Part shown: one piece after another, positions 4,185-22,972 of the stretch
How the letters are laid out: every line of letters starts with the position of its first letter
Numbering within the stretch: the first letter of the stretch is position 1
IMG/VR virus record: IMGVR_UViG_3300022752_000015
Location: 1-64,000 of that record
Length of the DNA: 64,000 nucleotides
Direction: 5' to 3' (one strand)
Translations under genes and position numbers: made by a program
The notes under the pieces: model-generated
The model's database searches: none
What the model saw: only the letters and a program-made list of their open reading frames with translations
What the model was told of the DNA's origin: nothing

Positions 4185-4380
4185 TGATTCTCTCCACCGC
4201 CCAACGGTTACTCCACAACCAAACCAACCCATTCGGGCCTAAAACATTGTATTCGGAGGGGCTCCATTCCAACCTTCTCCTTCCAATGAACAACCCAAAA
4301 AACGGTGGGGAATTCACTTCAGGGTTGTTGTGAAGTTTGAAAGGTTCACATATAACAGGATCTCCAACACACAACACCAT
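4171..4380 (-). CDS. KOW/SH3-like mini-protein
   Basis: VGDPV...GLFI...YNVL. Confidence 0.65.
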   Translation of the reverse strand: MVLCVGDPVICEPFKLHNNPEVNSPPFFGLFIGRRRLEWSPSEYNVLGPNGLVWLWSNRWAVERINDSW

Positions 4381-4391
4381 GGTTAAACTCC

Positions 4392-4421
4392 AATGTAAAC
4401 CATCCCATCCCGGTTTTACAC
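4392..4421 (-). promoter_or_regulatory. early promoter variant GTGTAA-N18-TACATT
   Basis: near-consensus with correct spacing, upstream of 4171..4380. Confidence 0.5.
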
Positions 4422-4679
4422 CGTGTGGAGTTCCAAATGGTTCTCACTCACCCACCCGAAAACCTCACCACCGAAAAACAGAACCTTACACTGATCCTCT
4501 TTGATTTCAATCACAACACCAATCGATCCGCTTGAAATTTTACCTATGAAACTCCGAGGAACTATGGATTCTCCAACCCAACGGATCTTCTCCGGGAAAT
4601 CGTAAATTCGGTGTAGATTTGTTGGGTGATTTTTAAGAGTTAAAATCCTTACAGAATCACCGGGTTTAAACCTGTTCAC
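4416..4679 (-). CDS. KOW/SH3-like mini-protein
   Basis: KPGDSVRI...GVVIEI...CKVLF...GWV..NHLEL; zero Ala. Confidence 0.75.
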   Translation of the reverse strand: MNRFKPGDSVRILTLKNHPTNLHRIYDFPEKIRWVGESIVPRSFIGKISSGSIGVVIEIKEDQCKVLFFGGEVFGWVSENHLELHTV

Positions 4680-4857
4680 CTGGAATCACCTCACACTTCC
4701 TCTCCACCCAATCCAATCCCCACCCACGGATCTCCTGTGTTCTTGGGTTAAGAACATGAACCAGGTTGATCTCCTTGTTTATCTCCAACACGAGGCAAAC
4801 ATCACCATCGAAATAATCCTCGATTACCACCATATCCCCGATCCGAAGTTTTCTCAC
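4666..4857 (-). CDS. KOW/SH3-like mini-protein
   Basis: RIGDMVVI...LVLEI...VHVL. Confidence 0.75.
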   Translation of the reverse strand: MRKLRIGDMVVIEDYFDGDVCLVLEINKEINLVHVLNPRTQEIRGWGLDWVERKCEVIPGEQV

Positions 4858-5060
4858 CCCAACACCTCAACCTCATCCTCCGGAACCAGGAGAATATCCT
4901 GAATTTCTCCATTGGTTTCCAACATCCGAATATTGAAAGATTTTTTATGGGTATCTCTGATTGGTGCCACGGGGCGAAAATGAAGTAGAACACCGGTGAT
5001 GGTGGGGAACTTCCACTTCTTGTGGAACCGAGTGATTCGAAGAAGATTTCCTATGTTCAT
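4854..5060 (-). CDS. KOW/SH3-like mini-protein
   Basis: MNIGNLLRI...GVLL...VEVL. Confidence 0.7.
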   Translation of the reverse strand: MNIGNLLRITRFHKKWKFPTITGVLLHFRPVAPIRDTHKKSFNIRMLETNGEIQDILLVPEDEVEVLG

Positions 5061-5314
5061 CTCACCAACTCCAGGATTTTCCTATCCGCCCAACCTACTC
5101 CACCGGGGGTTAACAACTTGATGTAGAAGAAATCCTTGTTCTCTGGAAACTCCGCGGTGAGTAGAACCAAACCTACATCCTTCCCATAGAAGAGTGTTTT
5201 CGTGGTGATTAGATAACCTCTATCATCCCAACAACGGGTTTCTCCTCCGTAAAGTTCAGCGGGATGGGGATCCCATGAATCCATTCGAAGTTTTACAATT
5301 GAACCTATGTTCAT
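5057..5314 (-). CDS. KOW/SH3-like mini-protein
   Basis: MNIGSIVKL...GLVLL...GGVGW...LELV. Confidence 0.75.
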   Translation of the reverse strand: MNIGSIVKLRMDSWDPHPAELYGGETRCWDDRGYLITTKTLFYGKDVGLVLLTAEFPENKDFFYIKLLTPGGVGWADRKILELVR

Positions 5315-5580
5315 CCCACCAACTCCAGATCACATCTTTTAATCCAACCTATCCCACCGGGGCACAATACCTTCACCCAAAAACTGGTGGGTAGAGAATC
5401 ATAAACATCATTGAGAATGTATCTTTGTTCCAGAATCACTCCCACCTCGGTGTAACGGAACCTCCCGGTGTGGTTCTTCCTGTAGATTGAAGTGAAATCA
5501 GGTGGATCATCCCAGAGGATTTTGTGATCCTCGTTACCTTCCATCTCGGGAATTAAACGAACTTGTGATCCGGGTTTCAC
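5311..5580 (-). CDS. KOW/SH3-like mini-protein
   Basis: GTG start (MKPGSQVRL)...GVILE...GGIGW...LELV. Confidence 0.75.
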   Translation of the reverse strand: MKPGSQVRLIPEMEGNEDHKILWDDPPDFTSIYRKNHTGRFRYTEVGVILEQRYILNDVYDSLPTSFWVKVLCPGGIGWIKRCDLELVG

Positions 5581-5828
5581 CTTTGAAACTCCTTCACCCA
5601 ACTCTGATGTGCCCAACCAACACCACGAGGGGTTAATAACTTCACATACTGGAGGTACCTATTCGTAATGATTCGAGTTTCAAGAACCAATCCTAGATCC
5701 GAAAAACCGAATGGAATATCGGTGGGGATGAGGTTATTGGTGATTGGATCCATTAGATCCGAATGGTATAACCAATGGGTGGTACCGGTATCTCCACCGT
5801 TCACACCAACAACATCACCGGGTTTCAC
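5577..5828 (-). CDS. KOW/SH3-like mini-protein
   Basis: GTG start (MKPGDVV)...GLVLE...GVGW. Confidence 0.75.
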   Translation of the reverse strand: MKPGDVVGVNGGDTGTTHWLYHSDLMDPITNNLIPTDIPFGFSDLGLVLETRIITNRYLQYVKLLTPRGVGWAHQSWVKEFQR

Positions 5829-6016
5829 TGGAACTTCTCCAACCATCTAACCGGAAACATTCTTATCCTATCACCCAATCCCTTTACATATTCACCGGGA
5901 AGATTGGGGGTGGTGTACCTCTCACCGAGGATAACCACCAACATTCCATGGAGATAATCATCCCGTGGATGGGCACCCGGTGGAACTGAAACTCGATATA
6001 GATCCCCTTTTCTCAT
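5825..6016 (-). CDS. KOW/SH3-like mini-protein
   Basis: MRKGDLYRV...GMLVVIL...WLEKF. Confidence 0.7.
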   Translation of the reverse strand: MRKGDLYRVSVPPGAHPRDDYLHGMLVVILGERYTTPNLPGEYVKGLGDRIRMFPVRWLEKFQ

Positions 6017-6216
6017 ACGATCTTCCTGATGGTATCACTGGGATGATGAACCAGTTTATCACCTCTTAGAACCACCCACCAATCAGCGGAACCGTTTTCA
6101 CCTGAACTCCTGTATCCATCATCCCAAAGTGATTCACGGATGATTATCCCGGTTGAGTGCGGATCATCCTCATCAAGAAACTCCGGAAGGATTTCAACAA
6201 CATCTCCGGGTTTCAT
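6013..6216 (-). CDS. KOW/SH3-like mini-protein
   Basis: MKPGDVVEI...GIII...WVVL. Confidence 0.75.
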   Translation of the reverse strand: MKPGDVVEILPEFLDEDDPHSTGIIIRESLWDDGYRSSGENGSADWWVVLRGDKLVHHPSDTIRKIV

Positions 6217-6416
6217 GGTGCCTCCGAGAGGAGTGTTAGGTTTTCCCATATGAAAGGAATGAAATCTTCGTTCCAGAAAACGATACAATCACACTCACCT
6301 GCAACCTGATCTCCCCATTCATCCAGTGGAACCTTATCACTCCAGAATATCCCCACGCGGGGTTCATGTGGTTCCAGAAAATCCGCGGAGATTAAAACCA
6401 GATCTCCGGGTTTCAC
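6213..6416 (-). CDS. KOW/SH3-like mini-protein
   Basis: MKPGDLVLI...GIF...CIVFW. Confidence 0.75.
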   Translation of the reverse strand: MKPGDLVLISADFLEPHEPRVGIFWSDKVPLDEWGDQVAGECDCIVFWNEDFIPFIWENLTLLSEAP

Positions 6417-6598
6417 TGGAGATTCCTAAAGATATTTCTGAATCCATTCATCTCCCACCTCACGGTGGAGTTTCCGAGTAGAACCTCAACCATGTTCCAG
6501 GAAACACGGAGAACCACACCGATCTCAGGGGTGTAACGGTGGATAACCAGGGATCCAGGTACCACCTGGTTCACACTGAGGATATCATCGTTTCTCAC
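6413..6598 (-). CDS. KOW/SH3-like mini-protein
   Basis: PGSLV...GVVL...VEVL. Confidence 0.7.
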   Translation of the reverse strand: MRNDDILSVNQVVPGSLVIHRYTPEIGVVLRVSWNMVEVLLGNSTVRWEMNGFRNIFRNLQ

Positions 6599-6801
6599 CG
6601 GATCACCTCTATGTAGTATGATTCCACTGGGTAACGGGTTATCCTCCCATCGGGATCGATAACCTTTATTTTTTCGTTTTCACCACCGATCTCAAAGTTT
6701 TCGTGTTCCAGGTAGATCCCAAACTTCCAACCGGTTTCACGGTAAACCGGATCCAATAGATCGATTCGGTGGATGATTTTGAGAAGAGAACCGGGTTTCA
6801 T
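6595..6801 (-). CDS. KOW/SH3-like mini-protein
   Basis: MKPGSLLKI...GIYL...IKVI...IEVI. Confidence 0.75.
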   Translation of the reverse strand: MKPGSLLKIIHRIDLLDPVYRETGWKFGIYLEHENFEIGGENEKIKVIDPDGRITRYPVESYYIEVIR

Positions 6802-7007
6802 TTTGGAAGTGTTCCGATGGGTGGTGTGGTTGAGATGTTGTGTTCCTGATATTCCAGTTTCTCACCGGTGAGTGGATTGAGAACCACATACCATGGTGTG
6901 GAGGAGTAGGTAGGTTGGAAAATATCGGAGATGATTACCGGTGTGTGGGGGTGAATGTATAGGGAACCGATGATAAAAACCAGATCTCCGAGTTGAATAT
7001 CCTTCAT
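6798..7007 (-). CDS. KOW/SH3-like mini-protein
   Basis: LGDLVFI...VII...YVVL. Confidence 0.7.
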   Translation of the reverse strand: MKDIQLGDLVFIIGSLYIHPHTPVIISDIFQPTYSSTPWYVVLNPLTGEKLEYQEHNISTTPPIGTLPK

Positions 7008-7219
7008 TCCACCACCTTCACGTTTCCTACATAACACCAACCAATATTTTCTCCACTGATAACCTTAACATCGGAGCGATAAACATCAACAACCAAACCG
7101 ATTCCGGTTAGAAGCCCGTGGTATTTCCTGGTTCCAGGAGGAACCGATCCGAGTGGGGATGAGAATAACTTGGAGGAACTTCCTGGGGAATTGTTGGTTA
7201 CAATATCACCGGGCCTCAT
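7004..7219 (-). CDS. KOW/SH3-like mini-protein, close paralog of 10234..10467
   Basis: MRPGDIV; shared SKLFSSP and N(I/V)GWC motifs. Confidence 0.75.
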   Translation of the reverse strand: MRPGDIVTNNSPGSSSKLFSSPLGSVPPGTRKYHGLLTGIGLVVDVYRSDVKVISGENIGWCYVGNVKVVE

Positions 7220-7397
7220 TGATGATTTTCCAGTTGGGTGTTACCATTTCGGTTTGAACCTCACCGTTGTGAAGAATGGTACACCAGTGTTCGTGGTTGA
7301 AGATGATTGGAGTTTCCAGTACCATTCCGATGTAGGTGTGCCATGAACAGGTTCCGGAACCCCACTTTTTAAATTCCACAAGATCACCTACATTCAT
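7206..7397 (-). CDS. KOW/SH3-like mini-protein
   Basis: MNVGDLVEF...GMVLE. Confidence 0.75.
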   Translation of the reverse strand: MNVGDLVEFKKWGSGTCSWHTYIGMVLETPIIFNHEHWCTILHNGEVQTEMVTPNWKIINEAR

Positions 7398-7602
7398 TCC
7401 AGATCTCCTCCAGGTAGTTCCAGTTTACCCATCCGATCTTCCCGTTGTAGAGAACCTTGATCCAGGTACCATTCGGAGGTGAAACGATCAAGAGGGATGA
7501 TCCGATTGGAATTCCATCATCCGGTAGGTGTTTGTGAACCTTATTCACCGTGGAATAGAAGTTGGTGAAACAAAGGTTTTTGGCAAGTGAACCGGGAAGC
7601 AT
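7384..7602 (-). CDS. KOW/SH3-like mini-protein, leaderless
   Basis: MLPGSL...IKVL...IGWV...LEEI. Confidence 0.75.
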   Translation of the reverse strand: MLPGSLAKNLCFTNFYSTVNKVHKHLPDDGIPIGSSLLIVSPPNGTWIKVLYNGKIGWVNWNYLEEIWNECR

Positions 7603-7608
7603 GTTTCA

Positions 7609-7638
7609 AGTATATCATCCCACGGTGGGGAATTTCAC
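7609..7638 (-). promoter_or_regulatory. early promoter GTGAAA-N18-TATACT, leaderless ATG 6 nt downstream
   Basis: consensus match. Confidence 0.8.
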
Positions 7639-7640
7639 TG

Positions 7641-7814
7641 TTACCCCACCAGGTGTTTTTCGTTTTTGAATTGAGTGAGAACCTCCCATAGGAGTTGTGG
7701 AAGGGAATCCTGGATGTGAAGGTATGATGAGTAGGAACAACACCACACCGGGCCGGGAGAAATAACTCCAGGTTTCTCTTTCCAGATTTTTACCGAACGT
7801 AGGAACTTAAACAT
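7641..7814 (-). CDS. hypothetical protein (57 aa)
   Basis: fills the intergenic gap on the coding strand. Confidence 0.35.
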   Translation of the reverse strand: MFKFLRSVKIWKEKPGVISPGPVWCCSYSSYLHIQDSLPQLLWEVLTQFKNEKHLVG

Positions 7815-7815
7815 T

Positions 7816-8181
7816 TTAAGTGAAATCCCCCACGATTAAATCCCAGCTTCCGGATCCATGCCCAACACAGTGATCCCCAACACTTCTGTGTAGTTCCATT
7901 CCTTCCGGGCACCACCGCCCTGGGCCACGTGTGGTGATGATTTTGATCATATCCTCGGGGAGAACCTCTTCATCATATTCATTTAGGATCTTTGTGTTGG
8001 GTTTACCCCATTCGGTGATCCAATCCTCCAGGGAATTGATGCCCCTCTCGGGGATGATGTGCAGGGAGAAACACCAACCGTAGGAGGATTTTCCGATGTG
8101 AAGAACCTCCTCATCGGGATCGTGTTTACAGGTTACACATTTCGAAGGTGATTCTTTGTGTAGGTAGTAGTTTGTTCCCAT
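7816..8181 (-). CDS. conserved phage hypothetical protein
   Basis: MGTNYY...LHIGKSSYGWCFSLH motif; AGGA SD. Confidence 0.7.
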   Translation of the reverse strand: MGTNYYLHKESPSKCVTCKHDPDEEVLHIGKSSYGWCFSLHIIPERGINSLEDWITEWGKPNTKILNEYDEEVLPEDMIKIITTRGPGRWCPEGMELHRSVGDHCVGHGSGSWDLIVGDFT

Positions 8182-8182
8182 C

Positions 8183-8425
8183 TCACTTTCCTCCTAAAAT
8201 CTCTTCCACTCGAAGTTCAGATTCACCACTTCTTTCCATTGCTCTCCATGGTAATGATCCACGTTCCTCCCGGTGAAGTTGATCCACCGAATCGATCTTA
8301 TCAACCTTATACACCGATGAACCTCTAATCTCCTCGGATAGGTTCCGGAAACCGATACTCTCAGCCTCGTGTGGATCAACACAATCCACAAGGATATCTG
8401 TGTGAAATGTTACTCGGTACAACAT
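8183..8425 (-). CDS. hypothetical protein, paralog of 12332..12619
   Basis: YRVxFxTD...EAExIGF...ERGSLPWR shared. Confidence 0.75.
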   Translation of the reverse strand: MLYRVTFHTDILVDCVDPHEAESIGFRNLSEEIRGSSVYKVDKIDSVDQLHREERGSLPWRAMERSGESELRVEEILGGK

Positions 8426-8431
8426 GATTCA

Positions 8432-8461
8432 ATCTTATCCTCCACCGGTTGGGTTTTTCAC
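8432..8461 (-). promoter_or_regulatory. early promoter GTGAAA-N18-TAAGAT, leaderless ATG 6 nt downstream
   Basis: consensus match. Confidence 0.8.
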
Positions 8462-8616
8462 CGGAGGTTAATCAAAAAATCCACTTCGAATGGTACGTAA
8501 ACATATTCCAACCTGCCGGGCCCTGATACCCATGAGGTTCCAGTTGGGGAAGGAGGTGAGGAACCCGGTGGAACTTCTCAACAACAAACGAAATCCACTT
8601 CGAATTCGAGGGAGGT

Positions 8617-8799
8617 TCACTTCTCATCCTCCTCCACTTCATAGTAACCTACCACATCACAGATCCTCTTGATGAAATCCTGGGAGTTTAGGATGATCCG
8701 ATCCGATTGGTAGATAACCTCGGAACAACTGATACCATTCTCACGGATGAAATCCATGCAAACCTGAAGTAGTTCATCCCTCATTCCTGATTTCTTCAT
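8617..8799 (-). CDS. hypothetical protein
   Basis: coupled to 8796..9311 by a 4-nt overlap. Confidence 0.65.
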   Translation of the reverse strand: MKKSGMRDELLQVCMDFIRENGISCSEVIYQSDRIILNSQDFIKRICDVVGYYEVEEDEK

Positions 8800-9311
8800 G
8801 ATTTACCCATCAAACCATTCAACCAACTCTCGTTATCCTCAGGAACAAAACTTCCAACCGGATCCCATAGAACCGTGAAACGATCCTCCTTCAACATATC
8901 CACCAGATCCTCCTCACTCCAGTTCTCGTGGGAGGGAATGAGGTGGTAGGTATCACCGATGAACTGGGGAACCTTGTTGATGATCTGCGGGATGTTGTTC
9001 ACATTGAGGAACACCGTGTGAAGTGAGAAGAGGTTATCCGGTTTCTCGTTCACATCGATCAACTCGGATGCGATCTTTTCCACCTTGAGAAGTTCCAGGA
9101 TGATCCCATCCGCACCGCTCTCGGAATATCGAGTTGCACTTCCGATATCGGCCACCCAACCTTGCCCGGATTCACTGTAGAACATAGGTGAACCCCAGGA
9201 GTTATTCTCCCCATCGAGGGATGAGTGGAACCTCAAAACGAAGTTCTTCTTCTCGGTGGATTTCTTGGTGGGGTTCTTCTTCGTGGAACTGGAGGATTTC
9301 TTGGTTGCCAT
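8796..9311 (-). CDS. hypothetical protein with Lys/Ser-rich N-terminal tail, leaderless
   Basis: MATKKSSSSTKK; start 6 nt after a -10 box. Confidence 0.75.
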   Translation of the reverse strand: MATKKSSSSTKKNPTKKSTEKKNFVLRFHSSLDGENNSWGSPMFYSESGQGWVADIGSATRYSESGADGIILELLKVEKIASELIDVNEKPDNLFSLHTVFLNVNNIPQIINKVPQFIGDTYHLIPSHENWSEEDLVDMLKEDRFTVLWDPVGSFVPEDNESWLNGLMGKS

Positions 9312-9315
9312 GATG

Positions 9316-9519
9316 TTATCCTATCCTATCGAGGTGGGGATTTTCACCGGGGAGGGAGATGTAGTGATCAGAGATCATTTGTTTCCTACCGGTGTGGAGG
9401 AGAACGGTGAAGAAACGGTGATCCATTGAGATATCGTTGTGTTCCTCGATGATTATCCCGAGTGTGGGGGAGATCATCCTCTGGGGATTGGTGTAGAGGA
9501 TGAGTTGCCCGATTCTCAC
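9316..9519 (-). CDS. KOW/SH3-like mini-protein
   Basis: MRIGQLI...GIII...FTVLL; paralog of 10061..10237. Confidence 0.7.
   Translation of the reverse strand: MRIGQLILYTNPQRMISPTLGIIIEEHNDISMDHRFFTVLLHTGRKQMISDHYISLPGENPHLDRIG
9318..9347 (-). promoter_or_regulatory. early promoter GTGAAA-N18-TAGGAT, leaderless ATG 6 nt downstream
   Basis: consensus match. Confidence 0.8.
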
Positions 9520-9704
9520 TAGATCTCCTGGAGGTCTGATTCTCGGCAGTGAAGAATTCCACGATCTGGAAACAATACCTTCCAGTGTGGGAACGGATCA
9601 TTTCCACGGAATTCGTAGGGGATGTGTTCGAGGATGATCCCAACATCACCGGGAAGATCCATTTGGAATCGGTACCTCCATACCACCATGTTACCAACCC
9701 TCAT
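9519..9704 (-). CDS. KOW/SH3-like mini-protein
   Basis: MRVGNMVVW...GIILE...WKVLF...DLQEI. Confidence 0.75.
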   Translation of the reverse strand: MRVGNMVVWRYRFQMDLPGDVGIILEHIPYEFRGNDPFPHWKVLFPDRGILHCRESDLQEI

Positions 9705-9891
9705 CCGTGATCCTCCTTGATCCATGTGGGTTTAACCACCTCATACTACCATCACCCAATAAAACTTTACATACATTGGAAATTGGATCAGGATCCTCAT
9801 GGATATCAATGATCAACCCAAGGATATAAATTATTTCCTTGGTGATGGGATTCCTTCCGTTCCTAAATTCTCTAAGTTCACCAACCTTCAT
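9691..9891 (-). CDS. KOW/SH3-like mini-protein
   Basis: MKVGEL...GLII...CKVLL. Confidence 0.75.
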   Translation of the reverse strand: MKVGELREFRNGRNPITKEIIYILGLIIDIHEDPDPISNVCKVLLGDGSMRWLNPHGSRRITDEGW

Positions 9892-10064
9892 TCCAACACC
9901 TGGAATAATTCATCTTTTAAGTGGATTGAGATCCTCCTGATTTTATCTCCATCGAGAATAACCAATGAATACCTCTCAATATCAACCTGAAGTATTAGTT
10001 GAATATCGGTATTCCATCCACTTATCCTTTTACTGGATGTTTTTATTAGATCTCCACGTTTCAC
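9888..10064 (-). CDS. KOW/SH3-like mini-protein (58 aa, not in ORF track)
   Basis: GTG start MKRGDLIK; 4-nt overlaps on both sides. Confidence 0.7.
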   Translation of the reverse strand: MKRGDLIKTSSKRISGWNTDIQLILQVDIERYSLVILDGDKIRRISIHLKDELFQVLE

Positions 10065-10237
10065 TGTAGAAAATCCAGGTAGTGGGTGGAGATTAGTTTA
10101 ACAATACCGTTTTCCAGTAGAACATTGTAGAATTGTTGATCCAGGGATATTCCAAGTTTTTCCTGGATGATTATCCCGATGAGGGGTTGAGGAATTCTAG
10201 TATTATTTCGGTAACGAACCAAGGAACCGGGTTTCAT
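10061..10237 (-). CDS. KOW/SH3-like mini-protein
   Basis: MKPGSLVRY...GIII...YNVLL. Confidence 0.75.
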   Translation of the reverse strand: MKPGSLVRYRNNTRIPQPLIGIIIQEKLGISLDQQFYNVLLENGIVKLISTHYLDFLQ

Positions 10238-10467
10238 TCCACCACTCGGAGGTTCCCCGCGAAACACCAACCAACATTTCCATCACAGGTGATCTTCACC
10301 TCGGAACCATGTTGTTCCAGAACCATACCAACCCCGGATAGATACCCGGTGGTGAAACGTGAAACATAACCATTGTTCCCAACCGTGATTGGAGAGGAAA
10401 ATAGTTTGGATCTGGAATTGGTTCCAAGGTTGGTTACCAAAGTTCCGGGGAGATATGTGGTGTTCAT
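10234..10467 (-). CDS. KOW/SH3-like mini-protein
   Basis: PGTLV...GMVLE...NVGWC...LRVV. Confidence 0.75.
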   Translation of the reverse strand: MNTTYLPGTLVTNLGTNSRSKLFSSPITVGNNGYVSRFTTGYLSGVGMVLEQHGSEVKITCDGNVGWCFAGNLRVVE

Positions 10468-10673
10468 GGTGTTGTTAGTAATCGGTTTTTTATCCAACCA
10501 ACCTTACCACGGTTCGTTAGGATTTTTGAGGATGATTTTCTGGATTCAATGATGATAACAATCTCGGGGGCTCTTATCCAATCCACTGCCACGCATCCTA
10601 GTGGAATTTCATCCATACACACATCCCAAACATAGGTTTGAACTGAACAGAGGTATAGTTCATTGGGTTTCAT
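10464..10673 (-). CDS. KOW/SH3-like mini-protein
   Basis: MKPNEL...VIIIE...KIL...VGWI. Confidence 0.7.
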   Translation of the reverse strand: MKPNELYLCSVQTYVWDVCMDEIPLGCVAVDWIRAPEIVIIIESRKSSSKILTNRGKVGWIKNRLLTTP

Positions 10674-10885
10674 TGGTGAACCTTGTACATGTATGAAACT
10701 TGGCTCCACCCAATTTTCTCCCCAATTAACCATTGAACGAAACCGTTTTGGGAGGGGGTGATGATGATCCCGGTGGAGGGTGGAATTTCCGGTGGGAATG
10801 TTGGGCCTGAGTATAGATCAGGATGTACCGGAAAGAATTGAAGTACCACCGAGGATTTAACCAGGGTTCCAGGGGAATATTTCAT
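10670..10885 (-). CDS. KOW/SH3-like mini-protein
   Basis: PGTLV...GIII...IGW. Confidence 0.7.
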   Translation of the reverse strand: MKYSPGTLVKSSVVLQFFPVHPDLYSGPTFPPEIPPSTGIIITPSQNGFVQWLIGEKIGWSQVSYMYKVHQ

Positions 10886-11055
10886 TGGAGAACCTTGAAG
10901 TTCCTTTTGAGGAAGAAGTAGGAGTAGATGGAGGTGGTTCCATTGTTCCACATGATTTCACATGCTCCGGTGGGGGATTCGGAGAGGAGAAGGGCGATAC
11001 CGGGTGGAACATGGTGGTGAGGTTCGATTGAGATGAGAAGGGAACCAGGAACCAT
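10882..11055 (-). CDS. KOW/SH3-like mini-protein (not in ORF track)
   Basis: MVPGSLLI...EIMWNNG...FKVL; 4-nt overlap. Confidence 0.6.
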   Translation of the reverse strand: MVPGSLLISIEPHHHVPPGIALLLSESPTGACEIMWNNGTTSIYSYFFLKRNFKVLQ

Positions 11056-11067
11056 GGTTATATGGTA

Positions 11068-11241
11068 TCATGTGGAATGTGGGTTTTTCACCACGGTGAA
11101 GTTTTTACTGATCCAATTGTATCCCCAACGATCCATGGTTTGGAGCCTGGGGTTGAAGAGGATAACAATGTTGAGGTGTTTGTGTACCTCGAGAACAAGG
11201 TTGGGATCTTCGTAGAAAATAACGAGATCACCGGGGCTCAA
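11068..11241 (-). CDS. KOW/SH3-like mini-protein (not in ORF track)
   Basis: TTG start MSPGDLVIF...LVLEV. Confidence 0.6.
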   Translation of the reverse strand: MSPGDLVIFYEDPNLVLEVHKHLNIVILFNPRLQTMDRWGYNWISKNFTVVKNPHST

Positions 11242-11414
11242 TGAACCACCTCGAACATCCGAGAGATGAAATCAACAGAGAATCGTGATGTGGTTCCGTT
11301 GTGGGCCCACATGATATCGAACCACCCGTTGGTTTCCTGGGAGATGATAACCGCGAGGGTTTCGTTGGGAAACTCACCATTGATGTGAAATCGTATCAGA
11401 TCTCCCCTCTTCAC
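11238..11414 (-). CDS. KOW/SH3-like mini-protein (not in ORF track)
   Basis: GTG start MKRGDLIRF...FDIMW...FEVV. Confidence 0.7.
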   Translation of the reverse strand: MKRGDLIRFHINGEFPNETLAVIISQETNGWFDIMWAHNGTTSRFSVDFISRMFEVVH

Positions 11415-11617
11415 AACACCACCTCGAACAAATCGCGGATAACATCATCACCAATTCTACGGGTGATTCCATTGGATAGGTGAACGAGGTAGTTAACCGT
11501 GTTCCACCTCTCATCGATGAGAACCTCGAGAATCAATCCTGATGTTGGATTTCCGTTGCGAACCTGGTAATCGTTGGGTAGGAGAAGTGTTCCGATGGGA
11601 AGTGGATCAGGTTTCAC
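11411..11617 (-). CDS. KOW/SH3-like mini-protein
   Basis: IGTLL...GLILEV...YLVHL...FEVV. Confidence 0.75.
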   Translation of the reverse strand: MKPDPLPIGTLLLPNDYQVRNGNPTSGLILEVLIDERWNTVNYLVHLSNGITRRIGDDVIRDLFEVVL

Positions 11618-11846
11618 TGAGAACCTCTATGTCATCCGAGATTTCACCATCCATCAACCAGGATTTTCCAATCACACCACCGTGGGAGGTGAAGAGAACC
11701 TTGAGTTGGTTGTACTTGGAACCACGGTGCTTGGGGATGAAATCGATTACGATTCCGAACCAATCACCACAAACGTTATCGAATAGTTGGTGTTGATATT
11801 CACCGGGAGAGGTGGGTTTGTTTCGAATCAAAGAACCGATTTTCAC
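11607..11846 (-). CDS. KOW/SH3-like mini-protein
   Basis: MKIGSLI...GIVI...LKVLF...IEVL. Confidence 0.75.
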   Translation of the reverse strand: MKIGSLIRNKPTSPGEYQHQLFDNVCGDWFGIVIDFIPKHRGSKYNQLKVLFTSHGGVIGKSWLMDGEISDDIEVLSET

Positions 11847-12079
11847 CTGAGAACCTCGAGAATTTCTTCCATCTCATCATTCAAGAGGAGTGCCCTCATC
11901 ACCAGGTTATCGGGTGTAACGAGGGCCTCGATGGTGGTGTAGTGAGTTGTGTAGTGGGATGGTGGAGTTACCTTGAGAACCACCGCGATCCAATCGAAGT
12001 CCTGGGAGATGATTTCCCTGAAGATAGCCACACCGGATGTTTGGTATCGATTCCTTCGAAATAGATCACCAGGTTTCAT
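11843..12079 (-). CDS. KOW/SH3-like mini-protein
   Basis: MKPGDLF...VVLKV...LEVL. Confidence 0.75.
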   Translation of the reverse strand: MKPGDLFRRNRYQTSGVAIFREIISQDFDWIAVVLKVTPPSHYTTHYTTIEALVTPDNLVMRALLLNDEMEEILEVLR

Positions 12080-12360
12080 AGCTCCTCTTCAGGAATCACT
12101 CGAAAATCATGGGTGTGGTACCCGAATCGAACCAATCCATCGTTCCCCACGAAGATCCCATGGCCCTTCATCCCTGGGATTTCACCTAGGAAAAGTATTG
12201 GATTTCCGGGGCGAAGTGGGTACAACCTTTCATCCTGGGGAGGTGGAGTAAATACCACCAAAAATCCTGAGGTAATTCCTCTAGGGAAATTAACGGGATT
12301 TTTTAGGTGTTCATCCAGGGGTATCCATGTTTCAACCTGGTGTTTTTGGTAGATTGCCAT
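12076..12360 (-). CDS. hypothetical protein with SH3-like C-terminal half
   Basis: LFLGEIPGMKGHGIFV...GYHTHDFRVI; GAGG SD. Confidence 0.65.
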   Translation of the reverse strand: MAIYQKHQVETWIPLDEHLKNPVNFPRGITSGFLVVFTPPPQDERLYPLRPGNPILFLGEIPGMKGHGIFVGNDGLVRFGYHTHDFRVIPEEEL

Positions 12361-12619
12361 TTTGTGCCTCTCTGAGGATTTGTTCCACAGGTTTTTCACG
12401 TTCTCCGCGGAGATCTCGTTGGGTATCCCTCCATGGTAAGGAACCTCTTTCCCACCTGCGAACCTGATCCGGAGATTCTAGGAGTTTGATTGAGAAAACC
12501 TCGGATCCTCGGTTATCAACCTCATCGGTGAGGTGTTTGAACCCGATCATCTCGGCTTCTTTTTCATTTTCACATTCCACCAGGAGATCGGTGAGGAATG
12601 AGACTCGATAGATGGCCAT
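12332..12619 (-). CDS. hypothetical protein, paralog of 8183..8425
   Basis: YRVSFLTD...ERGSLPWR. Confidence 0.75.
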   Translation of the reverse strand: MAIYRVSFLTDLLVECENEKEAEMIGFKHLTDEVDNRGSEVFSIKLLESPDQVRRWERGSLPWRDTQRDLRGEREKPVEQILREAQNGNLPKTPG

Positions 12620-12627
12620 GGTGTTGT

Positions 12628-12656
12628 ATACTAATCCATTTTTAGTGGGTTTTCAC
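12628..12656 (-). promoter_or_regulatory. early promoter GTGAAA-N17-TAGTAT
   Basis: consensus match upstream of 12332..12619. Confidence 0.7.
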
Positions 12657-12862
12657 CGAATGATTTCAAGGAATTCGTTGGGGATCCACCCGTGGGCATT
12701 GGGGAATGCCACCTGGGAACGGTAAGAGTGTTGTTCCGTTATGATTCCGAGTGAACCATAGGGGATAATCAGGGATGAATTGATTCGATTGTTGAAGAGT
12801 TCCGTGTAGGGTATGGCACCACCGGTGTTACAAACCCTGATCAAGGTTCCTACTGGATACAT
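12653..12862 (-). CDS. KOW/SH3-like mini-protein
   Basis: VGTLIRV...GII...GWI...LEII. Confidence 0.7.
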   Translation of the reverse strand: MYPVGTLIRVCNTGGAIPYTELFNNRINSSLIIPYGSLGIITEQHSYRSQVAFPNAHGWIPNEFLEIIR

Positions 12863-13080
12863 GGGTGAATTTCCTGGAGATCCTTGGAATCGAAGGTGTG
12901 AACCATGGAGGTTGTTGGAACGAGACACCGGCAGAAGTACATGGTGTACTTGAATTCAACATCGATGATGAGGAGTGGTTGATCGTAGTAGGGTGAGGTG
13001 CGGTACTTCGTGAGCCTCACCATGGAACCCCTGTTGAATGGTGGGTTCACTGTTGAACCTCCTTCATGCCAACAGTACAA
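12850..13080 (-). CDS. KOW/SH3-like mini-protein (start uncertain)
   Basis: RGSMVRL...LLIIDV...DLQEI. Confidence 0.6.
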   Translation of the reverse strand: MYCWHEGGSTVNPPFNRGSMVRLTKYRTSPYYDQPLLIIDVEFKYTMYFCRCLVPTTSMVHTFDSKDLQEIHPCIQ

Positions 13081-13546: not shown

Positions 13547-13620
13547 GGGATGAAAAACGACCGGGAGTGTTTAGTTCCCGGTCGAAAACTAGGTTAAGTT
13601 TTTAGTTGTGATCAGATCAA

Positions 13621-14472
13621 TCAGATCGATATTCCATAACGAGAAGACAAGTAAGACAAGGTAGCGGCTCTTTCTGAGCTATCGTGTTCCTTCTTGTAGT
13701 AGATTATCTCAGCGATTTTGCCATCGAAGGATCCATTTCCCATCGTTACTTTGTTAACGGGGGATGGAAGAGCTGGAACTGCTCCTGAATTAAATGAATC
13801 AGTGATTGTTTGTGACACACCATTTACTGCTTGGAAGGCACTTCCTACAGTCCCGCCTTGCGAGATTTTTAGCTCTACAATTCTGGCAGTAGAATCTATA
13901 GAATAATTGTAAAGATTAGCCGCGTAACCCGTCTCCAAACCTAAACGTTTTGTGCCCCATTGATCTGCCAAAAATAGCGAAATCATGCTTTGCTGCTGGT
14001 AAGTACCTAATGTACCGTATGTGAATATCCTTTTGGGATCGCCCACATAATTGTCGATGGAAATAACCGCGTATATAGTTAATGCAGAATCTCCAGATAG
14101 GTATGCAGCAGGTGATGTCATAGCTAGGTATGAGCCATAAAATAATCCCCCAGGTCCTGATGATACGAAACTAACTGCCGGTTGATTATTGAAAGCTGCT
14201 ACTGAGGATAGGTAAGTAGGTGGTTGCATAGGTGCTGCAAATTCGCCTGGTACTGTTAGTACATCACCAGAAGCTGAACGATCAGCCCAGCTGTTGACTG
14301 CTGCACCGTTAGAAGAGCCTGCATCATCCGCTCTAAACCACGCGCCGAGCAGTGTCATTGGAGGCGATCCACCACCTCCACCGCCACCACCACCCGATGA
14401 TGTGATGCTTATACCACCACCAATTCCTGTAAATTTGATGGATCCGCCGGATCCTTTTGATACTATGGCCAT
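13621..14472 (-). CDS. LamG/concanavalin-like domain virion-associated protein with poly-Gly linker
   Basis: AWFRADD...VNSWADRS...FNNQPAVSF...FDGKIAEIIYY...YLSSRYGI. Confidence 0.7.
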   Translation of the reverse strand: MAIVSKGSGGSIKFTGIGGGISITSSGGGGGGGGGSPPMTLLGAWFRADDAGSSNGAAVNSWADRSASGDVLTVPGEFAAPMQPPTYLSSVAAFNNQPAVSFVSSGPGGLFYGSYLAMTSPAAYLSGDSALTIYAVISIDNYVGDPKRIFTYGTLGTYQQQSMISLFLADQWGTKRLGLETGYAANLYNYSIDSTARIVELKISQGGTVGSAFQAVNGVSQTITDSFNSGAVPALPSPVNKVTMGNGSFDGKIAEIIYYKKEHDSSERAATLSYLSSRYGISI

Positions 14473-14542: not shown

Positions 14543-14743
14543 TCAATTTGACTCAACTCTTTCCATGTAATCCTCGTAGAACTGGTGTGTTTTTCCATCG
14601 GGTGTAAGGACCTCCACGATGTTGTCGAGGAATCGATCGGAGAAGAAGGTTCGTAGCACCACGTAGACCTGAGGTTCATCAGAGAACTTTACGAGTTCGC
14701 CGAGGAGGAGAGGTTCTCTCCATGTTTTAGGGGAGCGCTTCAT
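14543..14743 (-). CDS. KOW/SH3-like mini-protein
   Basis: LGELVKF...YVVL...VEVLTPDG. Confidence 0.7.
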   Translation of the reverse strand: MKRSPKTWREPLLLGELVKFSDEPQVYVVLRTFFSDRFLDNIVEVLTPDGKTHQFYEDYMERVESN

Positions 14744-14928
14744 TTTACAAGGTCCATGTAGTTTTCGGTTTCTTCCACTATTAAACCATCCTCGCAGAGT
14801 ACATACCACCAACGGTGTTGTTGATCACCCCACCAGTTGGTACGAGGAGATTCGTATAGAATTATACCAGTGAGAGGTTTTCCTTCACGACCTTCTTGAC
14901 GTCCCATGACCAAATCACCTGGTTTCAT
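14740..14928 (-). CDS. KOW/SH3-like mini-protein
   Basis: MKPGDLV...GIIL...WYVL. Confidence 0.75.
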   Translation of the reverse strand: MKPGDLVMGRQEGREGKPLTGIILYESPRTNWWGDQQHRWWYVLCEDGLIVEETENYMDLVK

Positions 14929-14940
14929 TTCTTCGATAAT

Positions 14941-14970
14941 AAGATAATATCCTCAAGCTGTTTATTTCAC
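14941..14970 (-). promoter_or_regulatory. early promoter GTGAAA-N18-TATCTT
   Basis: consensus match. Confidence 0.65.
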
Positions 14971-15011
14971 TTTTTCGGGAACTTATTGTTTCTCCGGTTT
15001 TCTAATGCATC

Positions 15012-16301
15012 ATGGCAAAAGAAGAAATTCTCAGTTTTGTTGGCAGTACAAGATCCGTTGAATTGAGGTTGGAATGGGGTAACTCAACCTTGAAGGTTGT
15101 TGATCTAGATCCTCCTAGGAACTTCACTGTTGGAAACACGATACACTGCGATCATCACCTTCCCATCGAACCGGTGGAAATCATTCATGTTGAAGGTGAT
15201 GATGTTTTTCTATGTGGAGAAAAGCTGGGTTTTGATGTTGAGAAAACCATTGAACATGGTGGTGTTACGTTCCGTGCTCGGTTGGGGGATAGAGGTGAGA
15301 AGGTTGTTGGCGGGTTTGAATTAGGAAATGGTGGGTGGTTCAATGGATTATCAGCTGTGATTCATGCCGCGTTCCTGGGTGTCATATTCTACTACAATCC
15401 CCTGTTGAATTCCACCGAAGATGGATCGATAACCGAGGAACAGAGGATTGTTTTATCTCAGTATCTTTCCACCGCGGCCGAGAGGGAGGAGAAGAGGATG
15501 GAATCCGAGGTGGAAAATGTTCTAAGCGGTGGTGAGGTTGGTGGAAGATCCAAAGGAAGTGAAGGAAACATGGGAAGTAGTTCCTCCAAACCTTCCAACT
15601 CACGTTACACGGTTGCAGGACCGAAGGATAATGTGGATCCACATGTATCGAAACAGGTTGCTCTAAAGGATGCTGAGAACTTTGGAATGGTTGGATTGTT
15701 GAGTTCCACCGGAGGAGATCCGAATTCTCCAACATCTCCTTGGGGTAGAGATGATTCTCTTGGAAATGATGCGGTGAGTTTCAATGGTTCACTTTGGGGT
15801 GATCAACCTGGGGATAACTTTGGTTCCAATGGATTGGGGCTTTCTGGGATAGGTGAAGGAAGTGGTGGGCCTGGTGAGGGGATAGGCGTTGGACCGAACA
15901 TTGGGGGTTTGGGGAACAACATTCATCATGGGTTTGGACCACCAGGAGTGTTATCGAAGAAGTATGTGCAGAAGGATATAAAGATGAGACCGAGTTCGAC
16001 CAGTGTATCAGGAAGAATTCCGCCTGAGGTAATACAGAGGATTATTCGCCAGAATTATGGGCGGTTCAGGGCGTGTTACGAAACGGGGTTGAGGAACAAC
16101 CCATCGTTGAGCGGAAGGGTTGCGGTGAGGTTTGTTGTAGGGCGAGATGGGTCAGTGGCGAGTGTTGGGAATGGTGGATCTGATCTACCTGACGGAGGGG
16201 TTGTGAATTGTGTGGTGAATTCCTTCAGAGGTCTGTCGTTTCCTGCCCCTGATGATGGAATCGTGTCTGTAGGATACTCAATACAGTTTTCACCGGGATG
16301 A
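15012..16301 (+). CDS. AgmX/PglI C-terminal (TonB-like) domain membrane protein, GltG-like, myxobacterial type
   Basis: single TM segment, Gly-rich linker with PWGRDDSLGND, and C-terminal IQRIIRQNYGRFRACYETGLRNNPSLSGRVAVRFVVGRDG...FPAP. Confidence 0.85.
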   Translation: MAKEEILSFVGSTRSVELRLEWGNSTLKVVDLDPPRNFTVGNTIHCDHHLPIEPVEIIHVEGDDVFLCGEKLGFDVEKTIEHGGVTFRARLGDRGEKVVGGFELGNGGWFNGLSAVIHAAFLGVIFYYNPLLNSTEDGSITEEQRIVLSQYLSTAAEREEKRMESEVENVLSGGEVGGRSKGSEGNMGSSSSKPSNSRYTVAGPKDNVDPHVSKQVALKDAENFGMVGLLSSTGGDPNSPTSPWGRDDSLGNDAVSFNGSLWGDQPGDNFGSNGLGLSGIGEGSGGPGEGIGVGPNIGGLGNNIHHGFGPPGVLSKKYVQKDIKMRPSSTSVSGRIPPEVIQRIIRQNYGRFRACYETGLRNNPSLSGRVAVRFVVGRDGSVASVGNGGSDLPDGGVVNCVVNSFRGLSFPAPDDGIVSVGYSIQFSPG

Positions 16302-17431: not shown

Positions 17432-17677
17432 TTATATTAACACATTTTTTAGATAATTTTCGTCAGAAGCAAGAGTTAACTCATAATCATAAAATTGGTA
17501 CATCTTGCCTTCAGGTGTCAAGACGTCGCATATCATACGTTTATAGTCAGCCACACGCTGCTCTTCCTTGTAAACATTTAACACCACGAAGACAGAATCA
17601 TTCCAATGCGGGAGGATGTTGTCATATCCAAACCACATAGGATCTATTCTGACGAGGTCTCCTAACTTTAATTTCAC
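17432..17677 (-). CDS. KOW/SH3-like mini-protein
   Basis: KLGDLVRI...VVLNV...DVLTPEG. Confidence 0.75.
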   Translation of the reverse strand: MKLKLGDLVRIDPMWFGYDNILPHWNDSVFVVLNVYKEEQRVADYKRMICDVLTPEGKMYQFYDYELTLASDENYLKNVLI

Positions 17678-19757: not shown

Positions 19758-19994
19758 TTACTGCGTGGCAAAAGGCATCAAAAGTTCAATCGGTACGTTT
19801 TTCACCGTACCATCAAATGTCAAAACTTTGGCGGATCTGCACGTTGCGGGTTGATTTGGATACGACAATATGATCACCATACGACGGTTCAGGTTAGCTG
19901 ACGTGCCGTCTGAATTTTCGTACGCGTCGGTGTAATCCCAGGCAAGGTCACCGAGTTCCATATACATAAATATTGAATCAGCAAAAATTCGCAA
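19758..19994 (-). CDS. KOW/SH3-like mini-protein (start uncertain)
   Basis: LGDLAW...VIIL...AKVLTFDG. Confidence 0.6.
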   Translation of the reverse strand: MRIFADSIFMYMELGDLAWDYTDAYENSDGTSANLNRRMVIILSYPNQPATCRSAKVLTFDGTVKNVPIELLMPFATQ

Positions 19995-20026
19995 GTGAAT
20001 TATATTTATTTTTGAGGAGGTTTGTC

Positions 20027-20794
20027 ATGAACAACCTAAAAACCTCAAAAAATGGATTGGAATTTATTTCTAGATGGGAAGGCGTCGTGTTACAACCGTA
20101 CATGGACGTTGGGGGATTGTGGACTATCGGGATTGGACATTTAATAACTCCGTACGATTCGTTTAGTACGATACCTAATGAAAAAGTTAAGGCGTTGTTA
20201 AAATCCAAAGATAGATCTCATCCTTATTCAGAACTTTTGATATCTAGAGAGGAGGCGCTGGAGTTCCTTGCAAGAGACATAGTCGACGTGGAAACAGCGC
20301 TCAATCGAGATATCAGAGTTCCTCTCAATCAGAATCAATTTGATGCGCTCGTATCGTTTGGATTTAACTGCGGTACAGGCGTTTTCAAAACTTCAGGAGC
20401 GTGTAGAGCGTTGAACGCAGGAAATTACAATGCTGTTGCAGAAAGATTATTAGATTGGAGTAAAGTAAGAATTGGTGGCGAACTGAGAACGAATAAAGGT
20501 CTTTTGGCAAGACGAACCGCTGAAGGAGAATTATTCAACAAAATTCCGTTTGTTCCTGTCGATCCGCACGAAGTACCAACAATCGTGTCGTGGACGAGAG
20601 AAACAATCATGGATACTCAAACCAGGCTGAAAATGCTTGGCTTGTATCCAGGAGTAATCGACGGGATTATGGGACCAGCCACAAGAAAAGGAATCGAAGA
20701 TTTCTCAAAAAAATACAACGTACCGACAGGCGCGGACCCAAAGATAGGAATTGCTCCTTCATGGTTAGCTGCGCTCGCAAAGGTGGTCGGATAA
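20027..20794 (+). CDS. endolysin: GH24 (T4-type) lysozyme with C-terminal peptidoglycan-binding domain
   Basis: WEG-x8-D-x5-TIGIGH, LNQNQFDALVSFGFNCG, GLLARRTAE, DGIMGPAT; GAGGAGG SD. Confidence 0.92.
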   Translation: MNNLKTSKNGLEFISRWEGVVLQPYMDVGGLWTIGIGHLITPYDSFSTIPNEKVKALLKSKDRSHPYSELLISREEALEFLARDIVDVETALNRDIRVPLNQNQFDALVSFGFNCGTGVFKTSGACRALNAGNYNAVAERLLDWSKVRIGGELRTNKGLLARRTAEGELFNKIPFVPVDPHEVPTIVSWTRETIMDTQTRLKMLGLYPGVIDGIMGPATRKGIEDFSKKYNVPTGADPKIGIAPSWLAALAKVVG

Positions 20795-20965: not shown

Positions 20966-22972
20966 ATGGCAAGAACATTCGTTCAGCAATCACAGATCAG
21001 TGGTTCATTAACATTTAACGATGCGATGGAAGCAGGCTCCGCGCTTGCTGGCAAGCAGACACTCGTAGGCGACCTCGACGCACTCCGCTCGCAGATCAAC
21101 AAGATCGTCGGCGGTGAGCGCTGGTACGATGCACTCAGCGGTTCACAAAACCTCGCAGACATCTACGCAGCATTGCAGGTAACTGGGGCTGATGCAAGCT
21201 TCCAGGGCGCAATGGACGTCGCTGGTGTGGCAGATTTTGATTCAGCAGTCTTCATGGCTTCTGATCTCGGAGTTTCTGGTTCGCTCGTTGTAGCAGGTCT
21301 TGCAGACCTCAACGGCGCACTTGAAGTAGCCGGAGTAGCTGACTTCGCTTCTGCAGCCTACATGGCTTCGGATCTTGGCGTCAGCGGCTCGCTCACAGTT
21401 GCAGGCCTCTCTGACCTCAACGGCGCCCTCGAGGTTGCTGGTGTGGCAGACTTCGCTTCAGCAGTCTACGCGGCTTCTGACCTCGGTGTCAGCGGATCAA
21501 TCACGGTTGCAGGACCTGCAACAATGAATGATGGCCTCACCGTAACAGGCGATCGTCTCGAAGTAACAGGTTCCATGGGCATCACCGGTGCAGTCGACTT
21601 CGACAGCACGCTCAACGTCGATGGCGTTGCAGACTTCAAGGCAGACGTCTATATGGCAGCTGCTCTCGGCGTCTCAGGTTCTGCATCTGTAGCAGGAGCA
21701 CTCGACGCAGGTTCACTCGAAGTTGCAGGTCTCTCTGACCTCAACGGTGCACTTGAAGTAGCTGGTGTTGCAGACTTCACATCTGACGTCTACATGGCAG
21801 CAGCCCTCGGTGTAAGCGGTTCGCTCACAGTTGCCCAAGCAGCAACGCTCTCTAATGGCCTCACGGTCAATGGAGCAGCTGCTGACTTCAATGCTGACGT
21901 AACAGCAAACAAGATCAGCATCGATGGCGATGCTGCTATGCACCTCTACATCGTTGATGCAGATGGTTCTATCAAGGATGAAGCTGCACTTTGGTTCGAC
22001 GGAACCAAGCTCTACGTGACCGGCGCTCTTGAGATCTCAGATGACCTCAAGGTCGGTGGAAACGACATCATCGACGGTTCCGACGCAACAGTGATCACAT
22101 TCAAGTCGATCAACAGCGTCGCCTCCAGCGTCGAAGTTGCAAACAACATGGAAGTCAAGGGCGACATGTTCTATGCCGTCAGCGCTTCTTTCTCAGGAGA
22201 CGTCACAGTCCAAGGTGATCTCACGATCCAGGGCTCGATGACATACATCGACACCGAGAACCTCAAGGTGAAGGATGCACTCATCCACCTCAACACAGGC
22301 GGAAACTCTAACCTCTCTCCACGTGGCCTTGTGCTCCATGGCGACCAGGCATATGACGATCTCGCCTTCGGCGCAAAGCCTGCTTCTGGTGACTTCGTCC
22401 TCGCAAAGGAAGTCTCTGACGCAGACGTCGACGCAGGAAACAGCGACGTATTCGCTAACGCGAAGCTCGCAGCAATGTGGATGTCTGAGATCAAGCTCGG
22501 TGGCATCGAAGGATCGCTCAGCGGTTCATTCGTGGCAACAGCAGCTGGTGCAGAACTCAGCTCAACAGCAGCACTCTCAGTCGCAGCAGCAGACGACATG
22601 ACCCTCGGTGCCAACGGCGAAGAAATCGGTCTCATGTCATCCGCCGAGAAGGGCGACTTCGACACGAACTTCGATGCAACGACGATCGTCGGCGCTCTCA
22701 ACGAGCTCTTCGACATGATCGGCGGTGGTTCTGCAGCTAAGGGTGACCTCAGCGTGGCAAACGTCGCAGGTAACACACTCACCTTCAGCTCGATCGGCAC
22801 ACTCACGGCAGCAGAACACAAGTTGGTCGACGTTTACCTCAACGGCGTCCTTCTCTCTCCAAGCCGCGATCTCTCCGGTCTCACAACGACAACTGTCGAC
22901 CTCGACTCTGCAATCGCCAGCGGCCTCATGGCTGATGACGTTATCACAGTCGTGATCCGCAGCGCAGTCTGA
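20966..22972 (+). CDS. virion fibre/structural protein with beta-helix-type repeats
   Basis: 36-aa tandem repeats (ASDLGVSGSLxVAGLxDLNGALEVAGVADFASAxYx) with 6-aa sub-period; C-terminal VYLNGVLL; strong codon bias. Confidence 0.7.
   Translation: MARTFVQQSQISGSLTFNDAMEAGSALAGKQTLVGDLDALRSQINKIVGGERWYDALSGSQNLADIYAALQVTGADASFQGAMDVAGVADFDSAVFMASDLGVSGSLVVAGLADLNGALEVAGVADFASAAYMASDLGVSGSLTVAGLSDLNGALEVAGVADFASAVYAASDLGVSGSITVAGPATMNDGLTVTGDRLEVTGSMGITGAVDFDSTLNVDGVADFKADVYMAAALGVSGSASVAGALDAGSLEVAGLSDLNGALEVAGVADFTSDVYMAAALGVSGSLTVAQAATLSNGLTVNGAAADFNADVTANKISIDGDAAMHLYIVDADGSIKDEAALWFDGTKLYVTGALEISDDLKVGGNDIIDGSDATVITFKSINSVASSVEVANNMEVKGDMFYAVSASFSGDVTVQGDLTIQGSMTYIDTENLKVKDALIHLNTGGNSNLSPRGLVLHGDQAYDDLAFGAKPASGDFVLAKEVSDADVDAGNSDVFANAKLAAMWMSEIKLGGIEGSLSGSFVATAAGAELSSTAALSVAAADDMTLGANGEEIGLMSSAEKGDFDTNFDATTIVGALNELFDMIGGGSAAKGDLSVANVAGNTLTFSSIGTLTAAEHKLVDVYLNGVLLSPSRDLSGLTTTTVDLDSAIASGLMADDVITVVIRSAV

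Follow-up and report, generated by a model that had tools for sequence, protein, structure and literature searches.

Gene and domain organization

The window analysed is the first 64 kb of a 212.8-kb IMG/VR record (IMGVR_UViG_3300022752_000015). Among small ORFs on the − strand, it contains a lone + strand gene that starts at ATG and codes for 429 aa (Table 1). In NCBIfam, the protein matched the AgmX/PglI C-terminal domain (NF033768, 75.6 bits against a cut-off of 40, aa 338-426) and, partially, the GltG equivalog (NF033760, 107.9 bits, profile positions 407-645 of 650). Pfam and PHROGs gave nothing. An FHA HMM built from cellular GltG, which scores 160-210 bits on the cellular proteins, did not find an FHA domain either. 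The initial annotation had described one TM segment, a Gly-rich periplasmic linker, an AgmX/PglI-type TonB-like C-terminal domain (CTD), and no recognizable N-terminal FHA domain, and our analysis confirmed this description.

We built an AlphaFold2 model on a 39-sequence alignment. It showed a beta-sandwich (pLDDT 75-89), a TM helix, a helix at aa 142-168, a disordered stretch, and a confident alpha/beta domain (pLDDT about 90). The stretch at aa 169-335 is 21.6% Gly, 15% Ser, and 7% Pro. Foldseek matched the C-terminal domain to TonB C-terminal domains (6sly, FusB 7zc8, and TonB in 2gsk). Interestingly, the beta-sandwich matched FHA domains (2lc1 and 3po8, Rv0020c, EssC, and YukB). It aligns to the second, central FHA domain of cellular GltG with W22, G41, C46, P51, and L72 invariant, and it is a shrunken remnant of this domain, which had not been noticed in the initial annotation.

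Table 1. Features of the gltG-like locus (positions in the 64-kb window)
Position	Strand	Residues	Feature
14961..15011	+		Conserved 51-nt leader or promoter region that travels with the gene
15012..16301	+	429 aa plus stop	Phage gltG-like gene
15051..15290	+	14-93	Predicted cytoplasmic FHA-like beta-sandwich, a shortened remnant of the central FHA domain of GltG
15333..15395	+	108-128	Predicted transmembrane helix with the S114-x3-H118 motif
15516..15986	+	169-325	Gly/Ser-rich periplasmic linker, including a conserved motif block at aa 226-300
15717..15755	+		Motif DPNSPTSPWGRDD (DPNAPTAPWGRDD in cellular GltG)
15987..16289	+	326-426	AgmX/PglI-type TonB-CTD-like domain

The gene is preceded by a leader that is nearly invariant between the window and viral contig L007 on one side and two further sequences, L003 and L004, on the other, although the coding sequence has a dS of about 1.06. 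The blastn match to L003 starts exactly at the first nucleotide of this leader and ends at the stop codon. The leader sequence is unique in the window. It does not fold better than shuffled sequence (z −0.22), and a sigma-70 promoter scan found no + strand site upstream of the gene.

Viral context and selection

The record is a contractile-tailed jumbo phage (about 59% complete by CheckV, 41% GC) with a DnaE-type polymerase, three tail-sheath paralogs, and a tape measure. L007 (200 kb) is syntenic on both sides of the gene, and there the gene is the best-conserved segment, with 91% nucleotide identity against 72-85% in the flanks. Furthermore, an independent DNA run has a 6.6-kb contig spanning 14398-18500, which covers the gene and its downstream neighbors. 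Five viral records each have exactly one copy of the gene, and the sequence occurs in lake, river, sediment, and wastewater metagenomes from ten or more studies. Against L007 and L003, dN/dS is 0.08-0.10 overall, 0.02-0.03 in the CTD, and 0.14-0.22 in the cytoplasmic domain. The record is a metagenomic assembly and its far end (204.5-212.8 kb) is oddly GC-rich, but the gene itself has a GC content of 47.7%, against 53-75% at Polyangiaceae glt loci. With its intact frame, purifying selection, and recurring neighbors, we rejected the possibility that it is mis-assembled host DNA or a decaying pseudogene.

Comparison with GltG and other energy transducers

The nearest proteins are metagenomic proteins of 420-490 aa without an FHA domain. 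Next come the FHA-bearing GltG proteins of about 680 aa from Sorangium, Polyangium, Chondromyces, and Minicystis, at about 42% identity over 97% of the query in the search (42-50% identity in the comparisons overall). In species-representative genomes, the best 80 of 493 confirmed loci come from Polyangiaceae/Polyangia or from coarsely labeled MAGs, plus one 1.7-kb contig labeled Longimicrobiales that is probably mis-binned. Thus the best hits are not generic TonB proteins. The homolog of Sorangium So ce26 matches the GltG profile end to end and lies between genes that match GltC (273 bits) and GltE on one side and TPR giants on the other, which is the gltC-D-E-F-G-H-I order.

The phage protein is GltG minus the N-terminal FHA domain and minus the Ala/Pro/NPF-rich linker, and it has a further deletion of about 36 columns inside the central domain, which is shortened by roughly 80 residues. 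It shares with GltG (PglI, MXAN_4867) of Myxococcus xanthus and its Polyangiaceae orthologs the central FHA-like domain, a single TM helix with S-x3-H, a long flexible periplasmic linker with the DPNxPTxPWGRD...GLGLSGIGEG motif block, and the CTD. The motif block and the CTD are 70% and 73% identical to cellular GltG, while the cytoplasmic domain is only 32% identical. The Ser and His of the TM helix are conserved in all 20 viral rows of the alignment and in most cellular rows. The score against NF033760 is well below the equivalog cut-off of 650 bits, but the syntenic Sorangium ortholog itself scores only 320 bits, so the cut-off is tuned to closer relatives of Myxococcus. The gene is not in a glt cluster. 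The neighbors are phage genes, and no other phage ORF matched 81 Polyangiaceae glt loci.

The initial annotation had left open a GltG or an AgmX affiliation. The protein is GltG-type (PglI) and not GltJ-type (AgmX), since NF033761 gave only E = 0.018 over the CTD and the N-terminus is FHA-like rather than ZnR or GYF. With TonB and TolA it shares an N-in TM helix, a long periplasmic spacer, and a C-terminal alpha/beta domain with the TonB-CTD fold, and its S-x3-H probably resembles the Ser/His pair that is part of the SHLS motif in these proteins. TonB and TolA work with a TolQR/ExbBD-type 5:2 stator (PMC9389320). However, there was no Pfam TonB_C (PF03544) match at E <= 1, the linker is Gly/Ser-rich and not Pro-rich, a cytoplasmic FHA-like domain is present, and the sequence relatives are GltG proteins.

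FHA-less AgmX/PglI C-terminal domain-containing proteins of about 500-570 aa are also abundant in Polyangiaceae cells (e.g. the cellular locus L052, 5677-7392). They have the same domain order of central FHA-like domain, TM helix, linker, and CTD, but their central domain is full-length and they are Ala-rich. They lie on chromosomes outside glt clusters, in Polyangium as tandem pairs among housekeeping genes. Therefore, the lack of the N-terminal FHA need not have arisen in the phage.

The protein family is known, but a phage-borne, FHA-less version has not been reported in what we searched. tblastn against 50,697 GenBank phage records and megablast of the region gave no match, and we found no paper on a phage-encoded GltG, PglI, AgmX, or TonB-like protein. 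A 2026 myxophage preprint mentions no jumbo phage and no TonB.

Phylogeny and host

In the ML tree, 22 viral-type sequences formed one clade (100/100) nested inside the Polyangiaceae GltG radiation (97/99 and 97/89). They come from low-Ala, FHA-less genes. Where contigs could be read, the neighbors are phage genes and the GC is 32-50%, while other members were classed as viral by composition only. Two of the related sequences, L008 and L009, keep a neighboring gene in common with the window, so the gene was inherited vertically within this phage group. The named FHA-less cellular proteins formed their own clade (100/97), separate from the viral clade, but the tree did not resolve whether the viral clade descends from canonical GltG or from such a paralog.

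Three viral-type copies fell outside the main clade, and they also lack the N-terminal FHA. L010 is a 184-kb viral contig that is syntenic with the phage record at 155-175 kb (25-68% amino-acid identity) and carries a gltG fragment at a different locus. This copy is 385 aa, and residues 69-385 are 70-73% identical to Polyangium GltG, starting from the middle of the TM helix. It forms a GC island of 57.5% against flanks of 47%. P0128 lies on 16 contigs, the longest over 200 kb, with Thy1, RNR, and DnaB genes. From the TM helix onward, it is 68% identical to the GltG of an uncultured MAG (L021) that groups with the Polyangiaceae GltG sequences. P0125 is similar, and both have a short, unmatched N-terminus and keep S-x3-H. 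Well-supported branches force at least three origins of the viral label, and 0 of 200 bootstrap trees showed one origin. However, the AU test of a single clade of all 25 viral-type sequences gave p = 0.061, so a single origin is not formally rejected. For L010, the different locus and the GC island argue independently for a separate, recent capture.

These captures make Polyangiaceae-like bacteria the most likely hosts, in line with the proposal of the initial annotation that the protein identifies the host group, although the host is inferred from gene donors and not from a spacer match or a culture. Other genes were not informative. The isocitrate lyase and a 668-aa beta-helix protein have only metagenomic, phage-group relatives, and the few MAG names among them (Chlamydiae, Actinobacteria) are probably mis-binned. 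An ORFan from the GC-rich end gave nothing in the ESM Atlas. The GC gap between phage and host is smaller than it first seems, since uncultured Polyangiaceae glt loci range from 52.6 to 75% GC, and a 2026 preprint reports candidate myxobacterial phage groups with 46-60% GC, some of them linked to Polyangiales. The gene links a widespread group of very large freshwater phages, about 330-420 kb when complete, to a family for which our searches found no cultured phage and no paper reporting a jumbo phage.

Possible function

In the published structural model of the M. xanthus machine (PMC11761067), the N-terminal FHA binds the GltI scaffold, the central FHA plus the TM helix bind the AglR5QS motor, residues 428-543 wrap GltD, and the TonB-like domain binds GltD and a GltF strand. 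By profile coordinates, the motif block of the phage protein corresponds roughly to the GltD-wrapping segment. AglR and GltG interact in a two-hybrid assay, and gltG is essential for gliding (PMC3169522). We found no MotA/ExbB or ExbD homolog and no other Glt component in the phage, and no MotA/ExbB homolog in four related viral records, so the protein must use host partners. We therefore suggest that it is a subunit mimic. It should insert in the host inner membrane with the N-terminus inside, where the TM helix and the small FHA-like domain would dock on the host AglRQS (TolQR-like) proton motor, the motif block on GltD, and the CTD on GltD and GltF. Without the part that in the published model ties GltG to GltI and so to the MglA/AglZ/MreB platform, it would compete with host GltG as a transducer that does not depend on the scaffold, and machines that take it up would be cut off from polarity control and focal-adhesion assembly. 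The likeliest net effect is that the gliding machine of the infected cell is disabled or re-purposed. We give this reading a probability of about 0.5. The partners are inferred from conservation and from an AlphaFold model of the M. xanthus proteins, not from Polyangiaceae or solved complexes, and the shortened central domain may impair docking on the motor. There is no experimental or expression evidence for it. The two runs labeled RNA-Seq behaved like DNA.

Selection is strongest on the parts assigned to partner binding. Moreover, nine positions are fixed differently in the viral clade and in cellular GltG, and five of them (323, 325, 336, 423, 425) lie at or beside the first and last CTD strands. 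The model makes the last strand and the adjoining first helix the binding elements for the GltF strand, which hints at tuned partner binding. A conceptual precedent is the prophage-encoded FimU (P-FimU) of Pseudomonas phages, a homolog of a structural subunit that is taken up into the host machine (PMC12952977). P-FimU belongs to the type IV pilus and keeps motility intact, while here a scaffold-binding domain is missing, so interference is more likely.

Alternatively, though less likely, the phage might supply a working transducer equivalent to the FHA-less paralogs of the cell, keeping a Glt-type envelope machine running while host gene expression is shut down. This machine could serve gliding or another AglRQS-driven surface process, as Nfs does in spore-coat assembly. 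The abundance of these paralogs and the strong purifying selection on all motor-side and periplasmic features fit this view, and if the phage gene descends from a paralog, the missing FHA is inherited and the protein may simply perform the unknown function of that paralog. However, the main viral clade is not placed with the named FHA-less cellular clade, the central domain is cut down further than in any cellular paralog aligned here, and L010 lacks half of the TM helix and so cannot be a full substitute. An unlikely but possible purpose of the mimicry is superinfection exclusion or receptor control, in which the occupied or de-energized Agl-Glt complex hides or locks a surface component that competing phages need for adsorption or DNA entry, such as the Glt outer-membrane module, an adhesin, or an energized receptor. 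Phages often block motility machines that serve as receptors, as with the T4P inhibitors and P-FimU, a hypervariable gene with a weak match to a virion structural protein lies next to the gltG-like gene, and the fixed changes in the CTD would also fit. On the other hand, the receptor of these phages is unknown, such jumbo phages are probably lytic, where exclusion matters for a shorter time, and the CTD is GltG-type rather than a generic TonB that would act on TonB-dependent receptors.

A role in lysis or egress, in which the periplasmic arm reaches the outer-membrane side as a spanin or TolA does, is very doubtful. The topology fits and a phage lysozyme with a peptidoglycan-binding domain lies 3.7 kb downstream, but the gene is not adjacent to it, no outer-membrane lipoprotein partner was identified (without a systematic search for an o-spanin), and the conservation follows the partner-binding segments of GltG, not coiled coils. 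The initial annotation had proposed a dominant-negative or competitor, blocking of a TonB-box receptor, or energizing of DNA entry, and all of these remain hypotheses. DNA entry is the least likely, because a gene expressed after entry cannot help entry unless the protein is carried in the virion.

If jumbo phages of uncultured freshwater Polyangiaceae have captured this transducer more than once, each time keeping the membrane and periplasmic parts and dropping the scaffold-binding FHA domain, and use it to switch off or take over the focal-adhesion gliding apparatus, this would be the first viral manipulation of a gliding (non-pilus, non-flagellar) motor and would supply natural dominant-negative GltG alleles. 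This broader reading is tentative. The Agl-Glt machine is probably the main motility system of Polyangia, in which type IVa pili are reported to be reduced or absent (preprint 10.64898/2026.09.14.751636). The retained and discarded parts also bear directly on the domain assignments of the current model of the focal-adhesion complex.

Amino acid composition

The initial annotation had suggested that Ala in cellular motifs is replaced by Ser in the phage protein through drift toward the local GC avoidance. To test this, we compared the phage protein with eight cellular GltG. At 25 columns conserved as Ala in the cellular proteins, the phage protein keeps Ala at 4 and has Ser at 8, Val at 5, and Thr at 2. 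Ala-to-Ser is the commonest of 134 replacements. Ala is 3.5% of the phage protein, against 9.3% in the cellular GltG over the same columns. Each of these replacements (Ser, Val, Thr) is reachable from an Ala codon by one base change that removes a G or a C, which fits amelioration toward the low GC of the phage.

The gltG-like gene and its related copies

The coordinates of the features described here are listed in the table. The 51 nt upstream of the start codon of the gltG-like gene are almost invariant between phages whose coding sequences differ at dS of about 1.06, and the nucleotide match to L003, a related phage sequence, begins exactly at the first of these bases. This stretch has no sigma-70-like site and no significant fold, and it is probably a promoter or leader that moves with the gene as a cassette. 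Within the encoded protein, nine positions are fixed differently in the viral clade and in cellular GltG. Five of them (aa 323, 325, 336, 423, and 425) lie at or beside the first and last strands of the TonB-like domain. The published model has the GltF strand bind at the last strand and the adjoining first helix.

A related jumbo phage (L010, viral contig IMGVR_UViG_3300037067_011302) carries a separate gltG fragment at another locus. The fragment is about 70% identical to Polyangium GltG and has 57.5% GC, against flanks of 47%. It is fused to a low-GC N-terminus of about 70 codons and lacks the first half of the TM helix. Furthermore, cellular FHA-less GltG-like genes were identified as a tandem pair in an uncultured Polyangium MAG (L052). 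The pair is outside any glt cluster and lies between genes for a lipid kinase, panE, an unknown 643-aa protein, and an asparaginase. While the function of these cellular genes is unknown, it matters for interpreting the phage gene.

Features of the viral record and of related sequences
Sequence	Coordinates	Strand	Feature
Window	3094-12928, also 14543-14812 and 17432-17677	- (3094-12928)	Small paralogous ORFs
Window	13592-14378 (gene 13621-14472)	-	Stretch replaced in another freshwater run
Window	14961-15011		Conserved region upstream of the start codon
Window	15978-16286 (aa 323, 325, 336, 423, 425 of the ORF)		Positions fixed differently in the viral clade and in cellular GltG
Window	19973-20794	+	Phage lysozyme
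Window	20966-22972	+	668-aa protein
Window	31432-32676	-	Isocitrate lyase gene
G000 (whole viral record)	97885-107321 (L092/L093)		Three tandem paralogous genes
G000	204500-212804 (L098)		GC-rich end of the record
L010	9794-10951		Separate gltG fragment
L052	5677-8795		Tandem pair of FHA-less GltG-like genes

Other genes in the viral record

The gltG-like gene sits, on the opposite strand, among small minus-strand ORFs. These are further to a family of at least 10 small (70-100 aa) paralogous ORFs that carry a PGxLV...G(I/V)GW motif and look like SH3-type small beta-barrels. In another freshwater run, about 710-750 unrelated bases replace one stretch of the window (13592-14378), while the flanks match. 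The gene at this position is Gly-rich and weakly resembles a virion structural protein (phrog_10356). It may be a variable cassette involved in host range.

A phage lysozyme with a peptidoglycan-binding domain is followed by a 668-aa protein (55% GC) with a weak bactofilin match, which we read as beta-helical. The relatives of this protein are metagenomic proteins, many of them on large contigs. The phage also encodes an isocitrate lyase (PF00463, 337 bits). Over a hundred metagenomic protein clusters are 80-95% identical to it, many on 190-370-kb contigs, and one is labelled as a Chlamydiae MAG, which is probably a mis-binned phage contig. This suggests a glyoxylate-shunt auxiliary gene typical of this phage group.

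Outside the window, the last 8.3 kb of the viral record has 52-67% GC against 41% overall and holds ORFans plus a UvdE endonuclease. This segment could be a recent acquisition or an assembly join, and it lies 190 kb from the gltG-like gene. There are also three tandem paralogous genes of about 1020 aa. The first of them (97885-100950) matches PHROG tail-sheath families, while the other two were linked to it only by blastp.
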